Virus record (IMG/VR): IMGVR_UViG_3300027793_000052
Location: 1 to 64,000 of that record
Direction: 5' to 3' (one strand)
Length of the DNA stretch: 64,000 bases
The notes beneath the pieces were generated by a model that ran no database searches, was not told the origin of the DNA, and worked only from the letters and a program-made list of their open reading frames with translations. Shown piece by piece: positions 2,651-31,292 of the stretch (position 1 is the first letter of the stretch; each line of letters starts with the position of its first letter). A program made the translations under genes and the position numbers.

Positions 2651-2972
2651 AATACTGATACTTGAATATTTGAAGCGGTTGGAATGATTACATCAAACAA
2701 CTATGATTCAGAAAAAGGACATTTTACCTAAGTATTGTCCAAGGTTTAATTAAAAGATGGGTATTAAGTTATCGTCCTGTTAAACTTAAAAAAACAATGG
2801 GAGTTTGTTAGCAACTCTAAAATCTAACAAGTTAGGAAGGGACTTTAAAACCCCCGAGTTTATTAGTGTCTGTAAAACCTAGTCAGGGTCACTCCTGGTC
2901 TTCCCCGAGATGGGGAACACGAAAAGTAACCATTATTCTGAAACATTCTCAGATATCAAGTTATCTAGTATT
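2651..2972 (+). ncRNA. Candidate Ro60-associated (Y-like) RNA, long form
   Basis: Ends pair (AATACT-GATA-CTTGA with TCAAG-T-TATC-T-AGTATT); carries GAAGCGGT-N8-TTACATC motif; lies upstream of Ro60. Confidence 0.5.
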
Positions 2973-2974
2973 TA

Positions 2975-3063
2975 AAAATATTCTATTGAAGCGGTGAAGA
3001 AAGTTACATCATTATTATTGAAAACGAAAAACACTTTCATCTAAAATACTCAATAGGTACTTT
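2975..3063 (+). ncRNA. Candidate Ro60-associated (Y-like) RNA, short form
   Basis: TATTCTATTGA/TCAATAGGTA closing stem, GAAAG/CTTTC inner stem, same GAAGCGGT-N8-TTACATC motif. Confidence 0.5.
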
Positions 3064-3105
3064 ATTTGTCCACGTTAACTGTAAGAGTTAATTGTGAGAC
3101 CTTAC

Positions 3106-3139
3106 AGTCCCTACGAGTAAAATTGTGGGGACTTTTTTT
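3106..3139 (+). terminator. Terminator hairpin immediately upstream of the Ro60 start
   Basis: AGTCCCTAC/GTGGGGACT plus T run; overlaps alternative hairpin CTGTAAG/CTTACAG. Confidence 0.6.
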
Positions 3140-3169
3140 ATTTTATTAAACAATATTAAATTTTAAGTT

Positions 3170-4780
3170 ATGACAAAGTTCAAATCAAAAGCAGTGGAAA
3201 ATTTTGACGGTGGTATTTCTTATACCTTAAACCCATTGGATACATTACGTATCGTGGCAGCATCATCTATCTTTGGTGAACCATCTTATTACAGAGGTTC
3301 TCACGACAAACCATCTAACTTATCTACGTTAAAGACGTATGACGTGTTAGGTTTGTACAAAGACCCAAGTGATACAACTACTGATGTTTTCACTAAGGCT
3401 ATCGACGAGGCTTTAGACTATGACTTCAAGGCAACCCTTGAGTTAGCTAAGACTCTTCGTCACGAACACTTCATGAGGTTAAACCCAGCGGTTATCTTCA
3501 TTAGAGCGTCTCAACACCCAAAGAGGGTTGAATTTAACGAAGCAAACCCAGGTTTGATGAAACAATACGGTTTGGACATTGTTGGTCGTCCTGATGACAT
3601 CACCAACCAATTTGATTACTACATGTTCTTAAACGGTTCTAAGAATGGTTTACCATCTATCGTTAAGAGGACATGGGCTGAGAAGTTGGCGTCTTTCACC
3701 AAGTACCAAATCAAGAAATATAAGTCAAAGTCATTAATTGACTTGGTTCGTATTTCTCACGCACACTCTGAAGTTATCGATGAGTTAATGAAGACTGGTG
3801 ACGTGGCTGTTTCTGAAACTGAAACAACTTGGGAATCACTTAGGTCTCAAGGTAAGACTTGGAAGGAAATTCTTAACACAATTAAGGTTTCACACATGGC
3901 TTTACTTAGGAACTTAAGGGGTATTTTCACTGAGGTGAATGATACTGAAGTGGCTAAGAAGGTTTTAACTGACCTTAAGGCAGGTGTTAAGTTTGGTAAG
4001 CAATTCCCATTCCGTTACTACACAGCTTACAAGGAAATCGATAAGGTTTCTATAAACCACAAGGGTATGATACTTGACGCTTTACAAGAGTGTCTTGACA
4101 TCTCTATCGAAAACTTCCCTAAGTTAAAGGGTAAGGTGGCTTGTTTATCAGATAACTCTGGTTCAGCTTGGGGTACAATGACCTCTGAGTATGGTACAAC
4201 CCATATTGCTGAAATTGCTAACTTATCATCTATCATCACAGCTTTATGTTCTGATGAAGGATATGTCGGTGTCTTTGGTGAAAGATTGAGTTTAAAACCT
4301 GTTTCTAAAAGAGACGGTATTATTACTCAGTTGGAAGAAACTTGTAAGAGAGGTAAGTCTCAAGGACAATCTTGTGAACACGGTATTTGGTTATTCTTAC
4401 GTGAAGCAATCGACACTAAAACTCACTATGATACTATCTTTATTTATAGTGACATGCAGGCAGGACACGGTGGTCTTTACGGTACAAGTGTAAGCCGTGG
4501 TGACGTTCACTCTAGAGGTGGAAGTTATGTAGACGTACTTAAAATGGTACAAGAATACCGTAAGAAGGTTAACCCAAAGGTTAACGTATTCACAGTCCAA
4601 GTGGCTGGATACAACAACTCTGTTGTACCTGAAAACCTTTACAGGGGTTCAGTACTTGGGGGTTGGACTGGTAAGGAAGCCTTATACGCTAGTGAGGTAA
4701 TCAAGACTTGGGATGAAATTGAGTCTAACGACAAGGTTACATCTGAGGTTGAAGTTACTGAACAAGTAGTACAATCTTAA
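3170..4780 (+). CDS. Ro60/TROVE-domain RNA-binding protein (Rsr-like) with vWA domain
   Basis: MALLRNLR, KQFPFRYYTAY, vWA DNSGS and YSDMQ motifs; 536 aa; codon usage (AAC, TTC, CGT) suggests high expression. Confidence 0.9.
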   Translation: MTKFKSKAVENFDGGISYTLNPLDTLRIVAASSIFGEPSYYRGSHDKPSNLSTLKTYDVLGLYKDPSDTTTDVFTKAIDEALDYDFKATLELAKTLRHEHFMRLNPAVIFIRASQHPKRVEFNEANPGLMKQYGLDIVGRPDDITNQFDYYMFLNGSKNGLPSIVKRTWAEKLASFTKYQIKKYKSKSLIDLVRISHAHSEVIDELMKTGDVAVSETETTWESLRSQGKTWKEILNTIKVSHMALLRNLRGIFTEVNDTEVAKKVLTDLKAGVKFGKQFPFRYYTAYKEIDKVSINHKGMILDALQECLDISIENFPKLKGKVACLSDNSGSAWGTMTSEYGTTHIAEIANLSSIITALCSDEGYVGVFGERLSLKPVSKRDGIITQLEETCKRGKSQGQSCEHGIWLFLREAIDTKTHYDTIFIYSDMQAGHGGLYGTSVSRGDVHSRGGSYVDVLKMVQEYRKKVNPKVNVFTVQVAGYNNSVVPENLYRGSVLGGWTGKEALYASEVIKTWDEIESNDKVTSEVEVTEQVVQS

Positions 4781-4785
4781 AAAAT

Positions 4786-5256
4786 ATGGGGGACTTAATG
4801 TCCCCCTATTTATTTTATAGTGATATTATATTATTATTATATTCCGTGGTAAAGACGGAATATTTTTCATTTCTCAAGTACAACCGATTCAAATTTGGTA
4901 AACAGGAGGTTTCACAATTTGTAATTTTTGAGTTTAAGTGGTTGTTTTCAATAATAATTTTTTATTTTCATAAGTGTGATGATTCACAAGATAGGTTTCA
5001 TACTCACGCTTTTAATGCCCTATCATTTAAACTATTTGGTCAATATGATGAACATATATTAGATGATGAATCTAATGGTTCCTATCATACAGAACGTAGA
5101 ACACAAGTGGTAAAATATTTCCCTAGGGATTCTTATCATCGTATAGCAAACAGTAATGGTTGTTGTACTTTGTTGTTATCAGGCCCATGGAAAAAACATT
5201 GGAAGGAGTATGTTGACGGTAATGTAATACATTATACTTGGGGTAGAAAGAAATAG
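4786..5256 (+). CDS. Cupin-like hypothetical protein
   Basis: RFHTHAFNALSF ... YHRI ... TLLLSGPW pattern. Confidence 0.45.
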   Translation: MGDLMSPYLFYSDIILLLYSVVKTEYFSFLKYNRFKFGKQEVSQFVIFEFKWLFSIIIFYFHKCDDSQDRFHTHAFNALSFKLFGQYDEHILDDESNGSYHTERRTQVVKYFPRDSYHRIANSNGCCTLLLSGPWKKHWKEYVDGNVIHYTWGRKK

Positions 5257-5309: not shown

Positions 5310-5993
5310 ATGGAAAAAGTAACATTAGAAATTCGAGCCGCTGAGGGTGGTGAAGATTCGAAACTCCTTGTGGAGGACATGGCTGCAGTCTATCTGAAAG
5401 CAGCCAAGAATAAAGGTTTTACCGTAGAGTCCGAACATTGAAGAGACGGACTTGTTAGTATTTAGCTGACAGGTAAAGGGGTTAAGAAATACTTCCAAAA
5501 CGAAGTTGGTTGTCATAGATGGCAAAGAATTCCACCCACTGAAAAACGTGGTAGAGTACATACAAGTACAATTACAGTAGCTTTATTAGATTCCCAAAAT
5601 TATCAGGAGATAGACATCAATATGGATGAATTACGTATTGAAACAACTCGTGGTACAGGTAATGGTGGTCAACATAAGAACACAACAGATTCTTGTGTGG
5701 TTATAACCCATATACCAACAGGGATAAAAGTGGTTAGAGATGGTAGAAGTCAACATAAGAATAAGGACGAGGCTTTAAACGAAATAAAACAACGTCTAAA
5801 TGATTTATACCAACAAAACCATATGGATAAAGTTTCTAAAGAAAGAAAGGGTCAAATCGGTAGTGGTAATAGGGGTTCTGAAAAGAAACGTACCTACAAC
5901 CAAAAAATGGATTTGGTTATCGATCATGAAAGTGATAAGTCTACAAGTCTTAAACAATTCATGAAAGGTAAATTAGAACTATTAATGTGTTAA
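5310..5993 (+). CDS. Class I peptide release factor homolog (RF1/PrfH-like, no N-terminal domain) with in-frame UGA and UAG
   Basis: EIRAAEGGED, HRWQRIPPTEKRGRVHTS (PxT) and GGQ all in one frame; stops at 5439 (TGA) and 5463 (TAG). Confidence 0.8.
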
Positions 5994-6263: not shown

Positions 6264-8063
6264 ATGAGACATTTAATCAAGAAAATATTAAAAGAAGACA
6301 TCTTTCAAATGGATAGATTAAGGCAATTGGAAGAAGGTGACTTGTTCATCATCACAAAAGTTAATCAAAATCTAGAAGATTGTGATCCAGATGCTCTTAG
6401 TGTTCTAAACCCACTTATCGGTAAAGTTTGTAAAGTTATAACCACAGATTGGGATGTTAATTTATATGACGGTATGTGTGAAGAACATTATGGTTGGGGT
6501 GCTTATATAATGTCAGAAGATATGGTTGGTGGCCACGATTTATACGAAAAGAATGGTGAATGTAAAAAGGATAAATGTTATTGGGTTAATGACTACTATA
6601 TAGATTATGATATAATAGATGATGTAAATACTGATGAATTTTTTACACAACTAGACGAACAAGAAGAAGATTTTGGATGGATGGATGATATTATAGATAT
6701 ATCTATAAAAATAGGTGATGTTTTTTATATAGTAGATTATAATTACGGTTATGACATGCAACCTATAAATTATAGACCAAATGTAGTAAGATATATTTTT
6801 TATGTTACAGATATTTTTGAAGAAGGCGGTAAACTTCATTTAAATTACAAATATTGTGAACCTGTAAATGTCACATATAACCCAAAAGACTATATTAAAT
6901 CCAAATGTCGTTCCACGCAAGATGAGGTTATTGAATATGAAAGAGCTTTAGAGTTGGTAGATAAACAATATTGGCGATTTATGGGTAATAACAATATGAG
7001 TAATAATATAAACGAACAAGAAGAAGATTTTGGTTGGGCTGAAGAATCCATCTCAGGTGATTTAAATTTGGGTAAATATTTTGAAAATTCTGATATTTGT
7101 TTTGATGATGAAGTTAATGTTGATAACAACTGTAAAATTACCGTAACAAAAGATAGTTTTGTTTTTAAACTAAATTATAGTTGGTGGTTGAATAAATTTG
7201 GTGAAGACAATTGGATGTTGGATAGACTTATCAGATATGGAAGTATGGGATATGACAGTTATTATGTTGATTATGAGTTGGATGATGAGGAGTTTAATTA
7301 TATTTATTATATGATTAATGAAGAAAATAGATATAAACTAGCTGATTGTTTAAGTGTATTAAATGAAGATGTAAGTGAAAATGATTTAAAAAATAATCTA
7401 TATGATGTTTTTGAAAATTTTAATGGTATCTTACCGGTAGAAGGAATGGCCTCAGATGTTGTTTATGAACTATCAAGAGCTTTAGAAAAAAATCGAAATC
7501 AACAAATAAATTTGGAGTTTGAAGATTTAATGTCAAAGACTGTCGCTAAATTTGAACATGTTGGAGGTTGGAAAGAAGACTACATTTTAATAAAAATACC
7601 AAAAGAATTGGTTTTAGAAGCTTTAGAGCAAAATAAGGATGAAAATTTAACTGATATTGTGAAAAAATACAGTTACGTTTTTGATATAAATTGGGATGAT
7701 TTTTATTATGGTACTTTTGATTTAAGTGGTTCTGAGGATCAAATTAACGATATTATGGCCGATTATTTGGATAAATTAATTGATATATTAAATAATGATG
7801 ATACGATACAGACATTAAATAATTTTACATCTTCATTAAAAAAATTAGGTTTTAAAAAAGAAAATAATAAATGGTATAAAACAATTAAAAAAGATAATTT
7901 AGATTATGTTTTTATTGTTAGTGATATAAATGGTGAAGACATGAATTTAATTCTAACTATAACCGTTTTTTATGATACACAAACCAAATATAAAAATTAT
8001 AAATATAAAATAAGTTTTGACGAGTTGGGTTATTACATTAATAATTATATTTTAGACATATAA
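6264..8063 (+). CDS. Modular protein with MRHLIKKILKE leader and two EQEEDFGW junctions
   Basis: Leader plus repeated junction motif. Confidence 0.7.
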   Translation: MRHLIKKILKEDIFQMDRLRQLEEGDLFIITKVNQNLEDCDPDALSVLNPLIGKVCKVITTDWDVNLYDGMCEEHYGWGAYIMSEDMVGGHDLYEKNGECKKDKCYWVNDYYIDYDIIDDVNTDEFFTQLDEQEEDFGWMDDIIDISIKIGDVFYIVDYNYGYDMQPINYRPNVVRYIFYVTDIFEEGGKLHLNYKYCEPVNVTYNPKDYIKSKCRSTQDEVIEYERALELVDKQYWRFMGNNNMSNNINEQEEDFGWAEESISGDLNLGKYFENSDICFDDEVNVDNNCKITVTKDSFVFKLNYSWWLNKFGEDNWMLDRLIRYGSMGYDSYYVDYELDDEEFNYIYYMINEENRYKLADCLSVLNEDVSENDLKNNLYDVFENFNGILPVEGMASDVVYELSRALEKNRNQQINLEFEDLMSKTVAKFEHVGGWKEDYILIKIPKELVLEALEQNKDENLTDIVKKYSYVFDINWDDFYYGTFDLSGSEDQINDIMADYLDKLIDILNNDDTIQTLNNFTSSLKKLGFKKENNKWYKTIKKDNLDYVFIVSDINGEDMNLILTITVFYDTQTKYKNYKYKISFDELGYYINNYILDI

Positions 8064-8614: not shown

Positions 8615-10249
8615 GTGAAAATAAAATTATCCATATTATTTTTTTTATTCAGTTTAATCAATTCGGTTAAGTCACAAGTATCTACATGGTATACATTTTC
8701 TGAAACGGTTGGTACTTATACGGCCATAACAGGTGGTACTCAATTAGTTACCACAACTGCCGGTGCTATAACATATGATACTGACGGTAATAATATCGTT
8801 CTTCCTACCACATCAAGATTTGTCGTAAATGGTATTATCATTACAAATGTAAATATGACTGCGGATGGTTCACTATGGTGTAATCCAGTTACACCGACAT
8901 CTGGTTTTGGTACTACGGGTCCATTACAATCAGGTCAAGATGCGGCTGGTATAATATCAGTTATGGGAATGGATTTACGTAGTACTGCATTAGCTACACA
9001 AGTTTATGAAAGAAGATGGCAAGATGTGGGGACTGAAGTTGTATTTCAATGGCAGAATTGTGCGAGATATCTACAAAGTGGTACGGAAAGATTTTCATTT
9101 CAAATTAGAATAAACAAAACAAATAATCAGATTAGAATGGTATATGGTAATATGACAACCATAGCCAACAGTACCACTTATCAACCACAAGTTGGAATAC
9201 GAGGTCTTACCAATGCTGATTACATAGCCAGACGATTAACTAATTCAGTACCCGATGCATCTCCTAATTGGGGCGCACCTAATGGGACGACTAACGCCAC
9301 TACAAACGCACATACAGTTAGGTTTACATCTAATGGTTCTTGTTTTCCTGTTTCAGGATTAACATTTATATGGTCATATAGCGGTCCTTTATTCAATAAC
9401 GATTTGTGTGAGAATGCAACTCTTGTTACATTACCATATAATAGTGGAGTTGTAACAACGATAGGTTCAAGTACAGATGTTCCGAATGTCGCATCACCCT
9501 GTGACGATTATATTACTCAATCAAATAACTTATGGTATAGAGTAGTTGGTACGGGTAATGATATGACTTTTAATACATGTAACGCCTCTACTAATTTTGA
9601 TTCTGAAATAAGAGTTTATACAGGTGATTGTTCTTCATTAAATAGTATGGTTGAAGTTGTATGTAGTGATGATGATCCAAATTGTACTTCAGGTGGTGTG
9701 TTAGATCCTTCCGTTACGTGGTGTTCATCATTAGGTGTTAATTATTTTATATCTGTCGGATATTACACAGTTACAAGTACATTAAGTACTGGTAATTACG
9801 TATTAAGTGGTGTAGAAGGAGGTTCTTGTTCATCACTACCAGTAGAACTAATTCATTTTTCCGGTAAAGGATTTGAACATTATAATTTATTAAGGTGGAA
9901 AACCGCCACAGAAATAAATAATGACCATTTCACACTTGAAAGAAGTTTAGATGGAATTAGATTTCAAGAAATACAACAAATTGATGGTATGGGTAATTCT
10001 AATGTAATTCAAGAATACTCGACACGTGATTTTGAACTAAATACAGGGTTAATATATTACAGACTTATACAAACAGATTATGATGGTACACGTACCTATT
10101 CAGATATAATTGTAATTAATAGAGACCCTTACAAATCACTTAAGGTTGTTAGAATTACAAATGTATTAGGTCAAGACATAAATGAATGGAGTCCAGGTAT
10201 TAAACTCTATCATTATAGTGATGGTAGTATTGAAAAGAGAATAGAATAA
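8615..10249 (+). CDS. Secreted beta-rich protein with T9SS-type C-terminal region
   Basis: GTG start, signal peptide, LPVELIHF...WKTATEINNDHFTLERS...YYRLIQTDYDG and terminal NVLGQ..G..YSDG..EK typical of Bacteroidota T9SS cargo. Confidence 0.7.
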   Translation: MKIKLSILFFLFSLINSVKSQVSTWYTFSETVGTYTAITGGTQLVTTTAGAITYDTDGNNIVLPTTSRFVVNGIIITNVNMTADGSLWCNPVTPTSGFGTTGPLQSGQDAAGIISVMGMDLRSTALATQVYERRWQDVGTEVVFQWQNCARYLQSGTERFSFQIRINKTNNQIRMVYGNMTTIANSTTYQPQVGIRGLTNADYIARRLTNSVPDASPNWGAPNGTTNATTNAHTVRFTSNGSCFPVSGLTFIWSYSGPLFNNDLCENATLVTLPYNSGVVTTIGSSTDVPNVASPCDDYITQSNNLWYRVVGTGNDMTFNTCNASTNFDSEIRVYTGDCSSLNSMVEVVCSDDDPNCTSGGVLDPSVTWCSSLGVNYFISVGYYTVTSTLSTGNYVLSGVEGGSCSSLPVELIHFSGKGFEHYNLLRWKTATEINNDHFTLERSLDGIRFQEIQQIDGMGNSNVIQEYSTRDFELNTGLIYYRLIQTDYDGTRTYSDIIVINRDPYKSLKVVRITNVLGQDINEWSPGIKLYHYSDGSIEKRIE

Positions 10250-10289
10250 TTATGTTTACGTTGTTGTTTTTATTCTTTATATTTTAACT

Positions 10290-14839: not shown

Positions 14840-14941
14840 AGTCAGGTGGCGTAATTGGTAACCGCTATAGGGTTGAGGCGTGCTAACTACCTATATAAAT
14901 TGTTTTTAAACAATGCAGGTTCGAGTCCTGTCCTGACTACA
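14840..14941 (+). ncRNA. tRNA-like RNA, AGTCAGG family copy 1 (aberrant anticodon arm)
   Basis: AGTCAGG/CCTGACT acceptor, CAGGTTCGAGTCCTG T-arm, no 7-nt anticodon loop. Confidence 0.65.
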
Positions 14942-15384: not shown

Positions 15385-15461
15385 AGTCAGGTGGTAGAAT
15401 TGTGATTACACCTTGGGACGAATGTCTAGGAGATACAGGTTCGAATCCTGTCCTGACTACA
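15385..15461 (+). ncRNA. tRNA-like RNA, AGTCAGG family copy 3
   Basis: Same acceptor and T-arm; central hairpin with 4-nt loop. Confidence 0.6.
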
Positions 15462-17795: not shown

Positions 17796-17871
17796 GGACT
17801 GTAAGCTGACAAGGGGTAGCTGTGGCCTGTTAAGCCAAGGGTGGTGGGTTCGATTCCCACACAGTCCGCCA
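17796..17871 (+). tRNA. tRNA-Asn(GUU) copy 2, CCA encoded
   Basis: TGGC-CTGTTAA-GCCA; GGACTGT/ACAGTCC. Confidence 0.85.
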
Positions 17872-17874
17872 AAC

Positions 17875-17946
17875 GGGGGTATAGCTCAGTGGTAGAGCAG
17901 AGAGCTGTTAACTCTAAGGTCGTAGGTTCAATCCCTTCTACCCCCG
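17875..17946 (+). tRNA. tRNA-Asn(GUU) copy 3
   Basis: AGAG-CTGTTAA-CTCT; canonical D-arm. Confidence 0.9.
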
Positions 17947-18303: not shown

Positions 18304-18375
18304 GGGCGTGTCATATAAGGGTTATTATGCGAAGCTTATACCTTCGTCAAGGTGGCTCAACTCCACCCACGCCTA
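18304..18375 (+). tRNA. tRNA-Ile(UAU)
   Basis: CGAAG-CTTATAC-CTTCG; GGGCGTG/CACGCCT. Confidence 0.78.
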
Positions 18376-21045: not shown

Positions 21046-21169
21046 AAAAAGAATAGAAGCGGTGGTATTGGTTACATCGATAATGGATATCAATTTGACA
21101 GCAAATCAAACGTTGTGGGTTCGAGTCCCATGATAAAAAACACCGATATTTTTATTCTCTGTTCTTTTT
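21046..21169 (+). ncRNA. tRNA-Cys-like body closed by a Y-like stem
   Basis: GAAGCGGT-N8-TTACATC motif, D-like hairpin, TTTGA-CAGCAAA-TCAAA, GTGGG-TTCGAGT-CCCAT; no normal acceptor stem. Confidence 0.55.
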
Positions 21170-21260: not shown

Positions 21261-21338
21261 GGATACGGCGCATAACGGCTGGTGTACCTGACTGTCTATC
21301 AGGTTTTAAGAGGGTTCGACTCCCTTCGTATCCGCCAA
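21261..21338 (+). tRNA. tRNA-Asp(GUC), CCA encoded
   Basis: CCTGA-CTGTCTA-TCAGG. Confidence 0.88.
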
Positions 21339-30868: not shown

Positions 30869-31259
30869 GGGGGTGACTTGGAATTGATTGGCTACATTAG
30901 TTATTGTAAAAGCATGTCGAGACTTGTTTGTAGGCTCGTTAAACCAACAATCAAAATTTTAAATGGCGACATTTTCGCAGACGCTACTGTAGGTCACTTT
31001 GTGACTGAAGGTGCAGAGGTTGTAGCCTAATTAGATTAGGGTACACAACGGGGTTGGATTACCTAGGAACAGAAGTCCAAAAAAGGGTGTTACCACTACC
31101 ACAAAAGGGTAAAGTCAAACATGGAATGTGTCAACTAAGTCCATGGGAGAACTAAAAGATGAAGTTGTATATTTTGGGTGGTTAGAAAACCACATCCTAA
31201 ACATGTAGAAGACTTTAATTCATTAGAACAAGACGGCGGTTCGACCCCGCTCACCTCCA
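30869..31259 (+). ncRNA. ssrA: tmRNA
   Basis: GGGGGTG/CACCTCC-A acceptor with G3-U70, GCATGTCGAG after helix 2, GACGGCGGTTCGACCCCGC T-arm; tag ORF 30965-31030. Confidence 0.92.
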
Positions 31260-31292
31260 CTTTAGAAATTTATTAACCTAAAAATCGAAAAA

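Follow-up and report, generated by a model that had tools for sequence, protein, structure and literature searches.

Probable YrlA-lineage Y RNAs accompany the Ro60 gene of a freshwater jumbo phage

A 64,000-nt stretch of DNA, comprising the first 64 kb of the 318-kb, AT-rich IMG/VR genome IMGVR_UViG_3300027793_000052 of a freshwater jumbo phage (hereafter the window), carries a gene for the TROVE protein Ro60 (Rsr) preceded by two structured intergenic RNAs, with a third RNA of the same kind in a tRNA cluster 18 kb away. From comparison with related loci, we consider it likely that these three are Y RNAs of the YrlA lineage, i.e., non-coding partners of the phage's own Ro60/Rsr. To our knowledge, Y RNAs are obligate partners of Ro60 from bacteria to humans, and their recognition by bacterial and phage Ro60 is known only through a short and loosely defined motif. 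A preliminary description of the region had reported two RNAs with a shared motif upstream of Ro60 and proposed that they were Y RNAs. That observation is real and more general than first noted, and its interpretation appears well supported by the comparative evidence laid out below.

The open reading frame (ORF) downstream of the RNAs encodes a complete Ro60/TROVE protein, as first proposed:

3170–4780, + strand: Ro60/TROVE (Rsr-like) protein, 536 amino acids, with the von Willebrand factor A (vWA) MIDAS (metal-ion-dependent adhesion site) motif DNSGS; Pfam TROVE at 36.2 bits against a cut-off of 23

The ORF matches phrog_850 at 1e-43, and NCBIfam returned no model for the protein. Its best sequence match in the Protein Data Bank is the Ro60 of Thermus phage phiLo, MIDAS motif included, and its closest named relative is gp540 of Bacillus phage G (52% identity). 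When modelled with AlphaFold (AF2) from 12 homologues (predicted local distance difference test score 80.6), the 13 best structural matches were all Ro60 proteins, led by that of phiLo (template modelling score 0.65/0.75) and followed by Deinococcus Rsr and the Xenopus and human proteins, and the match to these four spanned the full length. The protein hence combines the TROVE HEAT-repeat ring with a vWA domain bearing the MIDAS motif, of which D328, S330, and S332 are invariant in the 12 homologues.

The RNAs share the motif GAAGCGGT-N8-TTACATC, which occurs exactly at 2672–2694, 2988–3010, and 21056–21078, each time on the + strand. Only 0.01 copies would be expected by chance in the 318-kb genome, three were reached in none of 100 shuffles, and neither a relaxed pattern nor the covariance model found a further copy anywhere in these 318 kb. 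Both upstream copies had been placed within long closing stems, and each does lie on the 5′ strand of one; the count of two RNAs was, however, too low, having missed the copy at 21056 in the tRNA cluster. Across fetched DNA, the matching 3′ partner strands were present in only 26 of 116 distinct motif contexts, all 26 AT-rich and intergenic, and chance matches within coding DNA came without them.

Comparing the copies of the window phage, of IMG/VR contigs found by the motif, and of phage G, we found the motif to be the 5′ strand of a structural module. This begins with a closing stem (S1), followed by G-A-(bulged N)-G paired to C-U-C and the loop CGGN, and continues into a 9-bp stem (S2) made of the "N8" and the first U of TTACATC; UAC(A/U)UC follows at the top of S2, and after it come a variable insert and the S2 3′ strand. 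The internal loop is asymmetric, with CGGN on its 5′ side and 6–7 AU-rich nt on its 3′ side before CUC, and the conserved UUAC(A/U)UC is single-stranded at the top of S2. The family consensus reads G-W-W-G-C-R-G-N-[S2]-UUAC-W-UC ... R-W-U-A-U-U-C-W-C. Pairing of GAAG with C(A/U)UC inside the motif was ruled out, because it would leave A:A, U:U, and C:A at the middle positions and because the two segments border one and the same S2 strand. In the window, the module occurs as follows:

2651–2973, + strand: RNA1, Y-like RNA closed by a long stem and containing a multi-hairpin insert (descriptor and model R1)
2666–2956, + strand: minimal module of RNA1 (descriptor; model R1, 31.8 bits)
2672–2694, + strand: 5′ strand of the RNA1 module, with G2672-A2673, bulged A2674, G2675, loop 2676–2679, S2 5′ strand 2680–2688, and UACAUC 2689–2694
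2932–2956, + strand: 3′ strand of the RNA1 module, with S2′ 2932–2940, loop 2941–2947, CUC 2948–2950, and the start of S1′ 2951–2956
2982–3057, + strand: RNA2, a minimal 76-nt Y-like RNA consisting of the bare module (model R1, 86.5 bits, E 1.8e-15; covariation on alignment A1); S1 2982–2987 with 3052–3057, GA-A-G 2988–2991 with CUC 3049–3051, S2 2996–3004 with 3033–3041, UACAUC 3005–3010
21046–21169, + strand: RNA3, Y-like RNA between tRNA-Tyr and tRNA-Pro (exact motif; model R1, 46.1 bits, E 9e-7); S1 21050–21055 with 21160–21165, S2 21064–21072 with 21142–21150, CUC 21157–21159
21079–21131, + strand: tRNA-like insert of RNA3, with a D-like hairpin (21079–21091), an anticodon-like arm (21094–21110), and a T arm (21115–21131)

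The module accompanies a whole subfamily of TROVE genes. About 25 IMG/VR loci that contain the motif also code for this TROVE protein (37–100% identity), each with 1–4 motif copies at most ~800 nt upstream on the same strand, and the module was present in every related phage locus examined. Bacillus phage G has seven model matches, all near gp540, and the 1-kb interval preceding that gene holds a tandem series of five. Scanning one genome per species yielded 136 bacterial relatives of the Ro60 protein (47–61% identity), distributed over Bacteroidota metagenome-assembled genomes, many Clostridia, a Bacillus, Synergistaceae, and a spirochaete. The bacterial module counts given here refer to the best 80 of these 136 TROVE loci: 55 of 58 model units share the strand of the TROVE gene and immediately precede or follow it, the 5′ motif alone falls on that strand 73 times against 5 on the opposite one, and a module was detectable in no fewer than 48 of the 80 loci. 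The preliminary description had staked its proposal on the motif recurring at TROVE genes elsewhere, and the link to this subfamily indeed proved tight and same-stranded. RNA1 and RNA2 end 197 and 113 nt before the Ro60 ATG, within the ~4 kb and on the strand expected of Y RNA loci, as is also the case in the phage and bacterial relatives. On the IMG/VR contig L061, we observed five module units (9403–10279 and 6376–6523), four of them with YrlA-type permuted tRNA-like domains and three arranged head to tail and interleaved with ordinary tRNAs.

The helices of the module are maintained by compensatory change. Among 15 short units (alignment A1), 94.3% of cells were paired compared to 72.7% after shuffling, with none of 500 shuffles reaching the observed value; sliding the partners reduced pairing to 38–51%, and 12 of 18 pairs had changed on both sides. 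For the 58 bacterial units, aligned by fitting the matches to the covariance model, the corresponding values were 94.8% against 58.3%, with 37–48% when slid and 17 of 18 pairs changed on both sides, and the conserved A-U of the GA/UC helix was flipped to U-A in 15 of these units. Given this strong covariation of S1, the GA(N)G/CUC helix, and S2, these elements and the internal loop together form the kind of stem, joining the 5′ and 3′ ends and placing a protein-binding site beside a large internal loop, that characterizes Y RNAs.

YrlA RNAs have been described within 4 kb of Ro60 and on its strand in 254 bacteria and 22 phages; these RNAs share the 5′ motif GNCGAAN0-1G, the conserved sequence YUAY, and a tRNA-like domain whose order is permuted (Chen et al. 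2014, PMC4201824). None of the three window RNAs was matched by the Rfam YrlA model (RF02553, threshold 69 bits), and their relatives score 31.5–36.2 bits with it, below that threshold. The insert of the phage G unit L004:1724–1889 matches the tRNA-like domain of the model (36.2 bits, E 1e-5 to 9e-7), and the model aligns end to end with L061:9696–9846 (32.2 bits against the threshold of 69). In the latter alignment, the YrlA stem "cggCga" falls on S1 and GA, the loop on A-G-CGG-U (AGCGGU), the second stem on S2, CUAc on UUAC, and the 3′ "uc" on the UC of CUC, which makes the module the positional counterpart of the Rsr-binding stem of YrlA. With both this stem and YUAY thus placed on the module, the window RNAs would be Y RNAs from the YrlA lineage whose binding stem is a variant one and whose inserts are interchangeable. 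Matches of the YrlA model at 17816–17932 and 2456–2512 were rejected as ordinary tRNAs fitting its tRNA-like part.

Module and YrlA have in common their position beside Ro60 on the same strand, an end stem joined to a second stem through an asymmetric A-rich internal loop, as well as GAA-G near the 5′ end and YUAY on top of the second stem, here as a UUAC that is invariant in the three RNAs and nearly so family-wide. The permuted V/T/acceptor/D domain is likewise found in relatives (phage G unit L004:1724–1889, L061, and L016, as sub-threshold YrlA matches), whereas it is absent from all three window RNAs, RNA1 and RNA2 lacking it and RNA3 having its arms in natural order. The stems also differ in sequence (NGA(N)GCGGN ... 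UAUUCUC here, GNCGAAN0-1G ... ACUUGUC in YrlA) and in the length of S2 (9 bp compared to 7). The RNAs had been proposed as a divergent Y-RNA class without the usual Ro-binding helix sequence: the Y-RNA-type partnership beside Ro60 is borne out, while the usual elements are not entirely missing, since the GAA-G core and YUAY are kept. Judging from these likenesses, the module is best classed as a clade-specific variant of the YrlA-type binding stem rather than an unrelated class, in a partnership that is already known.

Each RNA also has a counterpart, or lacks one, in the insert it carries. RNA2, which amounts to the binding stem capped by a small apical loop, is YrlB-like: Salmonella YrlB and phiLo Yrl1/Yrl2 are similarly small Y RNAs without a tRNA-like domain (PMC4201824, PMC12135203). 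The Ro60 of phiLo binds two upstream Yrl RNAs and forms complexes with the host PNPase (PMC12135203, 2025), and the tandem placement of two RNAs just upstream of a phage Ro60 gene is the same here. Nevertheless, there is no detectable sequence similarity to YrlB or to the phiLo RNAs beyond the GAA core, the defining feature of the latter is a CGAA motif within a large bulge, and binding was demonstrated for phiLo, whereas here it is putative. Y-like RNAs beside the Ro60 gene of phage G have already been reported, as cited in PMC12135203.

RNA3 (fold z-score −2.65) has its tRNA-like insert in natural tRNA order, with an anticodon-like arm of 5 bp and a 7-nt loop, and the Rfam tRNA model scores 21.4 bits on 21072–21139, below its threshold of 29. 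A T arm and a 5-bp anticodon-like arm in natural order on top of a Ro-binding stem recall Deinococcus radiodurans Yrn1 (PMC4201824), a likeness of described architecture; RNA3 differs in its additional D-like hairpin and in its location within a tRNA cluster 18 kb from Ro60. Because it sits inside this cluster, RNA3 is probably co-transcribed and excised together with the tRNAs.

In RNA1 (fold z-score −2.35), S2 is formed by 2680–2688 pairing at 9 of 9 positions with 2932–2940, including three G-U pairs, and its 3′ strand is invariant among class A relatives. The insert (2695–2931) measures 237 nt and is predicted to fold into several hairpins, in line with the ~200-nt multi-hairpin interior initially noted; homologues of RNA1 in L017, L094, L046, and L009 are 258–299 nt long, with the length of the insert kept and its sequence partly so. 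The insert matched no known RNA family, and a wcaG match in RNA1 (17 bits, E 1.9) was dismissed as noise; likewise, in an Rfam search of the region at gathering and E-value thresholds, no family accounted for RNA1 or RNA2. Within the insert lies a conserved strand that could form a competing helix:

2703–2713, + strand: AUGAUUCAGAA, able to pair with 2936–2946, which excludes S2

This alternative helix is favored by RNAalifold and has one compensatory change in L009, and under constrained folding it is predicted at −77.0 kcal/mol compared to −73.1 for the S2 form. As it is both predicted to be more stable and accompanied by a compensatory change, the RNA1 module may not always form, and RNA1 may be a two-state RNA that alternates between S2 and the 2703–2713/2936–2946 helix.

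RNA1, RNA2, and Ro60 appear to be expressed together from the following elements, preceded by two tRNA genes that lie outside the RNAs and provide context only:

2410–2561, + strand: tRNA-Glu and tRNA-Arg, directly 5′ of the RNA1–RNA2 unit
2593–2621, + strand: promoter-like site of the RNA1–RNA2 unit (TTGACA, 17 nt, TAGTAT; 10/12 scan matches)
3068–3100, + strand: hairpin between RNA2 and T1, with the base GUCCAC...GUGAGAC
3106–3140, + strand: intrinsic terminator T1, an 11-bp GC-containing hairpin with a T7 run
4788–4816, + strand: terminator T2, right after the Ro60 stop codon (scan)

The promoter-like block is kept upstream of RNA1 in five phages, where the DNA further upstream is unrelated, and the block kept in four relatives is GCGTATTGACAGA...TAGTATTAACAAAC. 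T1 ends 30 nt before the Ro60 ATG at 3170 and is almost unchanged in five relatives, and in most relatives, too, a terminator separates the last RNA from the Ro60 gene. Of the 3068–3100 hairpin, the base is kept in the window phage, L017, L030, L046, and L031, and neither the sequence nor the length of its apex is constant; the hairpin may belong to RNA2 or serve as a processing site. Two further candidates were discarded: a PyrG-leader match (30.6 bits against a threshold of 65) is merely the terminator, and a promoter inside T1 (GTGAGA, 18 nt, TAAAAT, 3094–3123) loses its spacing in L046 and is absent in L009.

Parts of the stretch were found in 13 public runs, 11 of them recorded as RNA, the best being freshwater metatranscriptomes. 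Three of these each contain a single contig that starts within RNA1 (at 2678, 2803, or 2917) and runs through RNA2 and T1 to 4785–4787, with reads spanning T1, although RNA ends, strand, processing, and relative levels are not readable from such assemblies. In the same assemblies, the neighboring genes are patchy or uncovered, and 2488–2648 and 4903–5224 are empty. The ORF that follows Ro60 (4786–5256), which starts inside T2 and matches phrog_4786 (annotated cysteine dioxygenase) at 1e-21, is missing in three of four compared RNA-library assemblies.

The simplest reading of this arrangement would be a single operon composed of the promoter (~2593–2621), RNA1, RNA2, a leaky T1, Ro60, and T2. 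Most transcripts would then probably stop at T1 (3106–3140), and those that read through would supply the Ro60 mRNA and end at T2 (4788).

Several observations weigh against the identification of these RNAs as Y RNAs. By their predicted stems, RNA1 is 291–323 nt, RNA2 76 nt, and RNA3 116–124 nt long, compared to 80–130 nt for published Y RNAs (PMC4201824), so that RNA1 is two to three times the length of those described, and in RNA1 the alternative helix is predicted to be ~4 kcal/mol more stable than S2. RNA3 shares the strand of the Ro60 gene but, at 18 kb from it, lies beyond the ~4-kb distance. Of the strict GNCGAAN0-1G motif, which the window RNAs lack, the GAA-G core alone is found, with variable S1 pairs in place of the preceding GNC, and none of the three reaches any Rfam threshold. 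With the model and the 5′ motif combined, no module was detected in ~32 of the 80 bacterial loci. Finally, the expression evidence consists of assembled contigs that are silent on RNA ends, strand, processing, and levels, and recognition of the module by Ro60 is deduced from sequence comparison.

The alternative that survives best, albeit an unlikely one, is that the upstream structures are mainly a cis-acting leader, with Ro60 binding its own 5′ untranslated region and thereby controlling read-through at T1. The RNAs, T1, and the ORF do follow one another on one strand, with 30 nt from T1 to the ATG and no obvious promoter between them; contigs from RNA libraries bridge T1, and the terminator between the last RNA and the gene recurs in most relatives. 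A leaky terminator that sets the ratio of RNA to mRNA, however, needs no feedback, and the same module occurs 18 kb away in a tRNA cluster and, in bacteria, often as arrays downstream of the gene. A terminator with an overlapping alternative hairpin had been described just before the Ro60 ATG. The terminator is real and conserved, and the hairpin (CUGUAAG 3079–3085 with CUUACAG 3101–3107) is present in the window; it nevertheless shares only 2 nt with the T1 stem, the 3068–3100 hairpin is its main competitor, and it is not conserved in relatives, which rules it out as an antiterminator. No conserved antiterminator was found among the relatives' loci, such that, of the conserved and mutually exclusive terminator and antiterminator of an attenuator, T1 alone is conserved. 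In L017 (6742–7077) and also in L030, a 111-amino-acid SLOG-family protein (Pfam YAcAr PF10686) is encoded between T1 and Ro60 in what are two close relatives, its ATG lying 11 nt after the T run. The suggested autoregulation of Ro60 through the terminator is thus unsupported, given a hairpin that is not conserved, a gene that intervenes in two relatives, and bacterial RNAs that are often downstream.

Slightly less probable still is that the module is recognized not by Ro60 but by another factor (for example, a processing enzyme of the RNase III type, a tRNA-modifying or -repair enzyme, or a phage protein) and merely travels with the Ro60 gene. The many units that carry tRNA-like inserts and lie among tRNAs would fit such a factor, as would the departure of the Ro-binding sequence from the published consensus, and Ro60 binding of the module is itself putative. 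On the other hand, the TROVE subfamily is the only consistent neighbor of the module across phages, Bacteroidota, Clostridia, Synergistaceae, and Spirochaetes; TROVE adjacency was the search criterion, yet strand and distance are also constrained. The module moreover occupies the Rsr-binding stem position of the YrlA model, and the GAA-G and YUAY elements (PMC4201824) are kept. That the copies are decayed repeats, tRNA-derived or mobile, that serve no function themselves, as the T arms of RNA3 and several relatives and the tandem arrays might suggest, is very improbable and already disfavored by compensatory changes that maintain two helices over >70 divergent sequences, by sequence blocks that stay invariant while the Ro60 protein drops to 37% identity, by the presence of the region in RNA libraries, and by the conserved promoter.

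A resemblance to vault RNA deserves mention because TEP1, the protein partner of vault RNA, is likewise a TROVE protein. The likeness is weak and consists of the conserved GGUUAC-N-UC and, downstream of it, a T-arm-like GGUUCGAG box; the architecture differs, and the similarity is largely that of any tRNA-like RNA, plus an 8–9-nt word. The Rfam vault RNA model (RF00006, threshold 34 bits) gives 18.1 bits on RNA3 (21069–21130, E 0.08) and 13.4 bits on a phage G unit (L004:1734–1812, E 2.2), and a wider search of three loci listed no vault RNA match, so a relationship stays below significance. It would be a long shot that the GCGG and UUAC(U/A)UC(G/A) of the module are the words that stand contiguous and conserved in vault RNA (..GcGGUUACuUCga..), and that this recognition element is older than the split between Ro60 and TEP1. 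If true, this phage and bacterial TROVE subfamily would connect Y RNAs and vault RNAs.

Beyond the Ro60 locus, the window holds 22 tRNAs and one tmRNA, and no near-identical DNA was found in a search of a phage collection. Four of the tRNAs were detected by Rfam but not by ARAGORN (14840–14939, 15385–15459, 18304–18375, and 21261–21334), and some are unusually long (100 nt for 14840–14939, 89 nt for tRNA-His, and 92 nt for tRNA-Cys). A DnaJ-like protein (171–884), a small RF-1-domain protein that is an ArfB-like ribosome-rescue factor (5622–5993), and the tmRNA (30869–31262) accompany the tRNAs and Ro60 in what resembles a gene set for translation and RNA quality control. A Shine-Dalgarno-like AGGA core precedes only 3 of the 60 window ORFs of ≥120 amino acids, the closest relatives of Ro60 in bacterial bins are from Bacteroidota (Crocinitomicaceae, Saprospiraceae, and Flavobacterium), and the samples holding the stretch are freshwater; taken together, this hints at a Bacteroidota host, with which the sigma-70-like character of the conserved RNA1 promoter is at odds.

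If the three RNAs are indeed Y RNAs, the module would be their shared protein-binding part (S1, GA(N)G/CUC, the internal loop, S2, and UUAC(A/U)UC), and the variable insert on top of S2 would act as the effector part: essentially none in RNA2, a tRNA-like domain as in Deinococcus Yrn1 in RNA3, and a 237-nt multi-hairpin domain in RNA1. Analogy with Deinococcus, Salmonella, and Thermus phage phiLo suggests that the RNAs may gate the Ro60 ring and/or tether Ro60 to an exoribonuclease such as the host PNPase, which would reshape the turnover of structured RNA during infection.

The module offers a sharply defined recognition candidate, backed by covariation and with invariant nucleotides at fixed helical spacing, and it marks a large Ro60 subfamily that is missed by current models, found in jumbo phages related to Bacillus phage G, in freshwater Bacteroidota-associated phages, and in many gut and rumen Clostridia. 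Many intergenic RNAs that are currently unannotated would be captured by a covariance model based on the module. One and the same binding stem is combined with no insert, with either of two types of tRNA mimic, or with a 237-nt domain; this interchangeability supports seeing Y RNAs as modular adaptors, and the series of inserts provides a natural set for finding what each adaptor recruits. That the putative operon occurs in metatranscriptome assemblies from freshwater and has tRNAs, a tmRNA, and a ribosome-rescue factor as its companions suggests that this phage brings its own RNA quality-control set.

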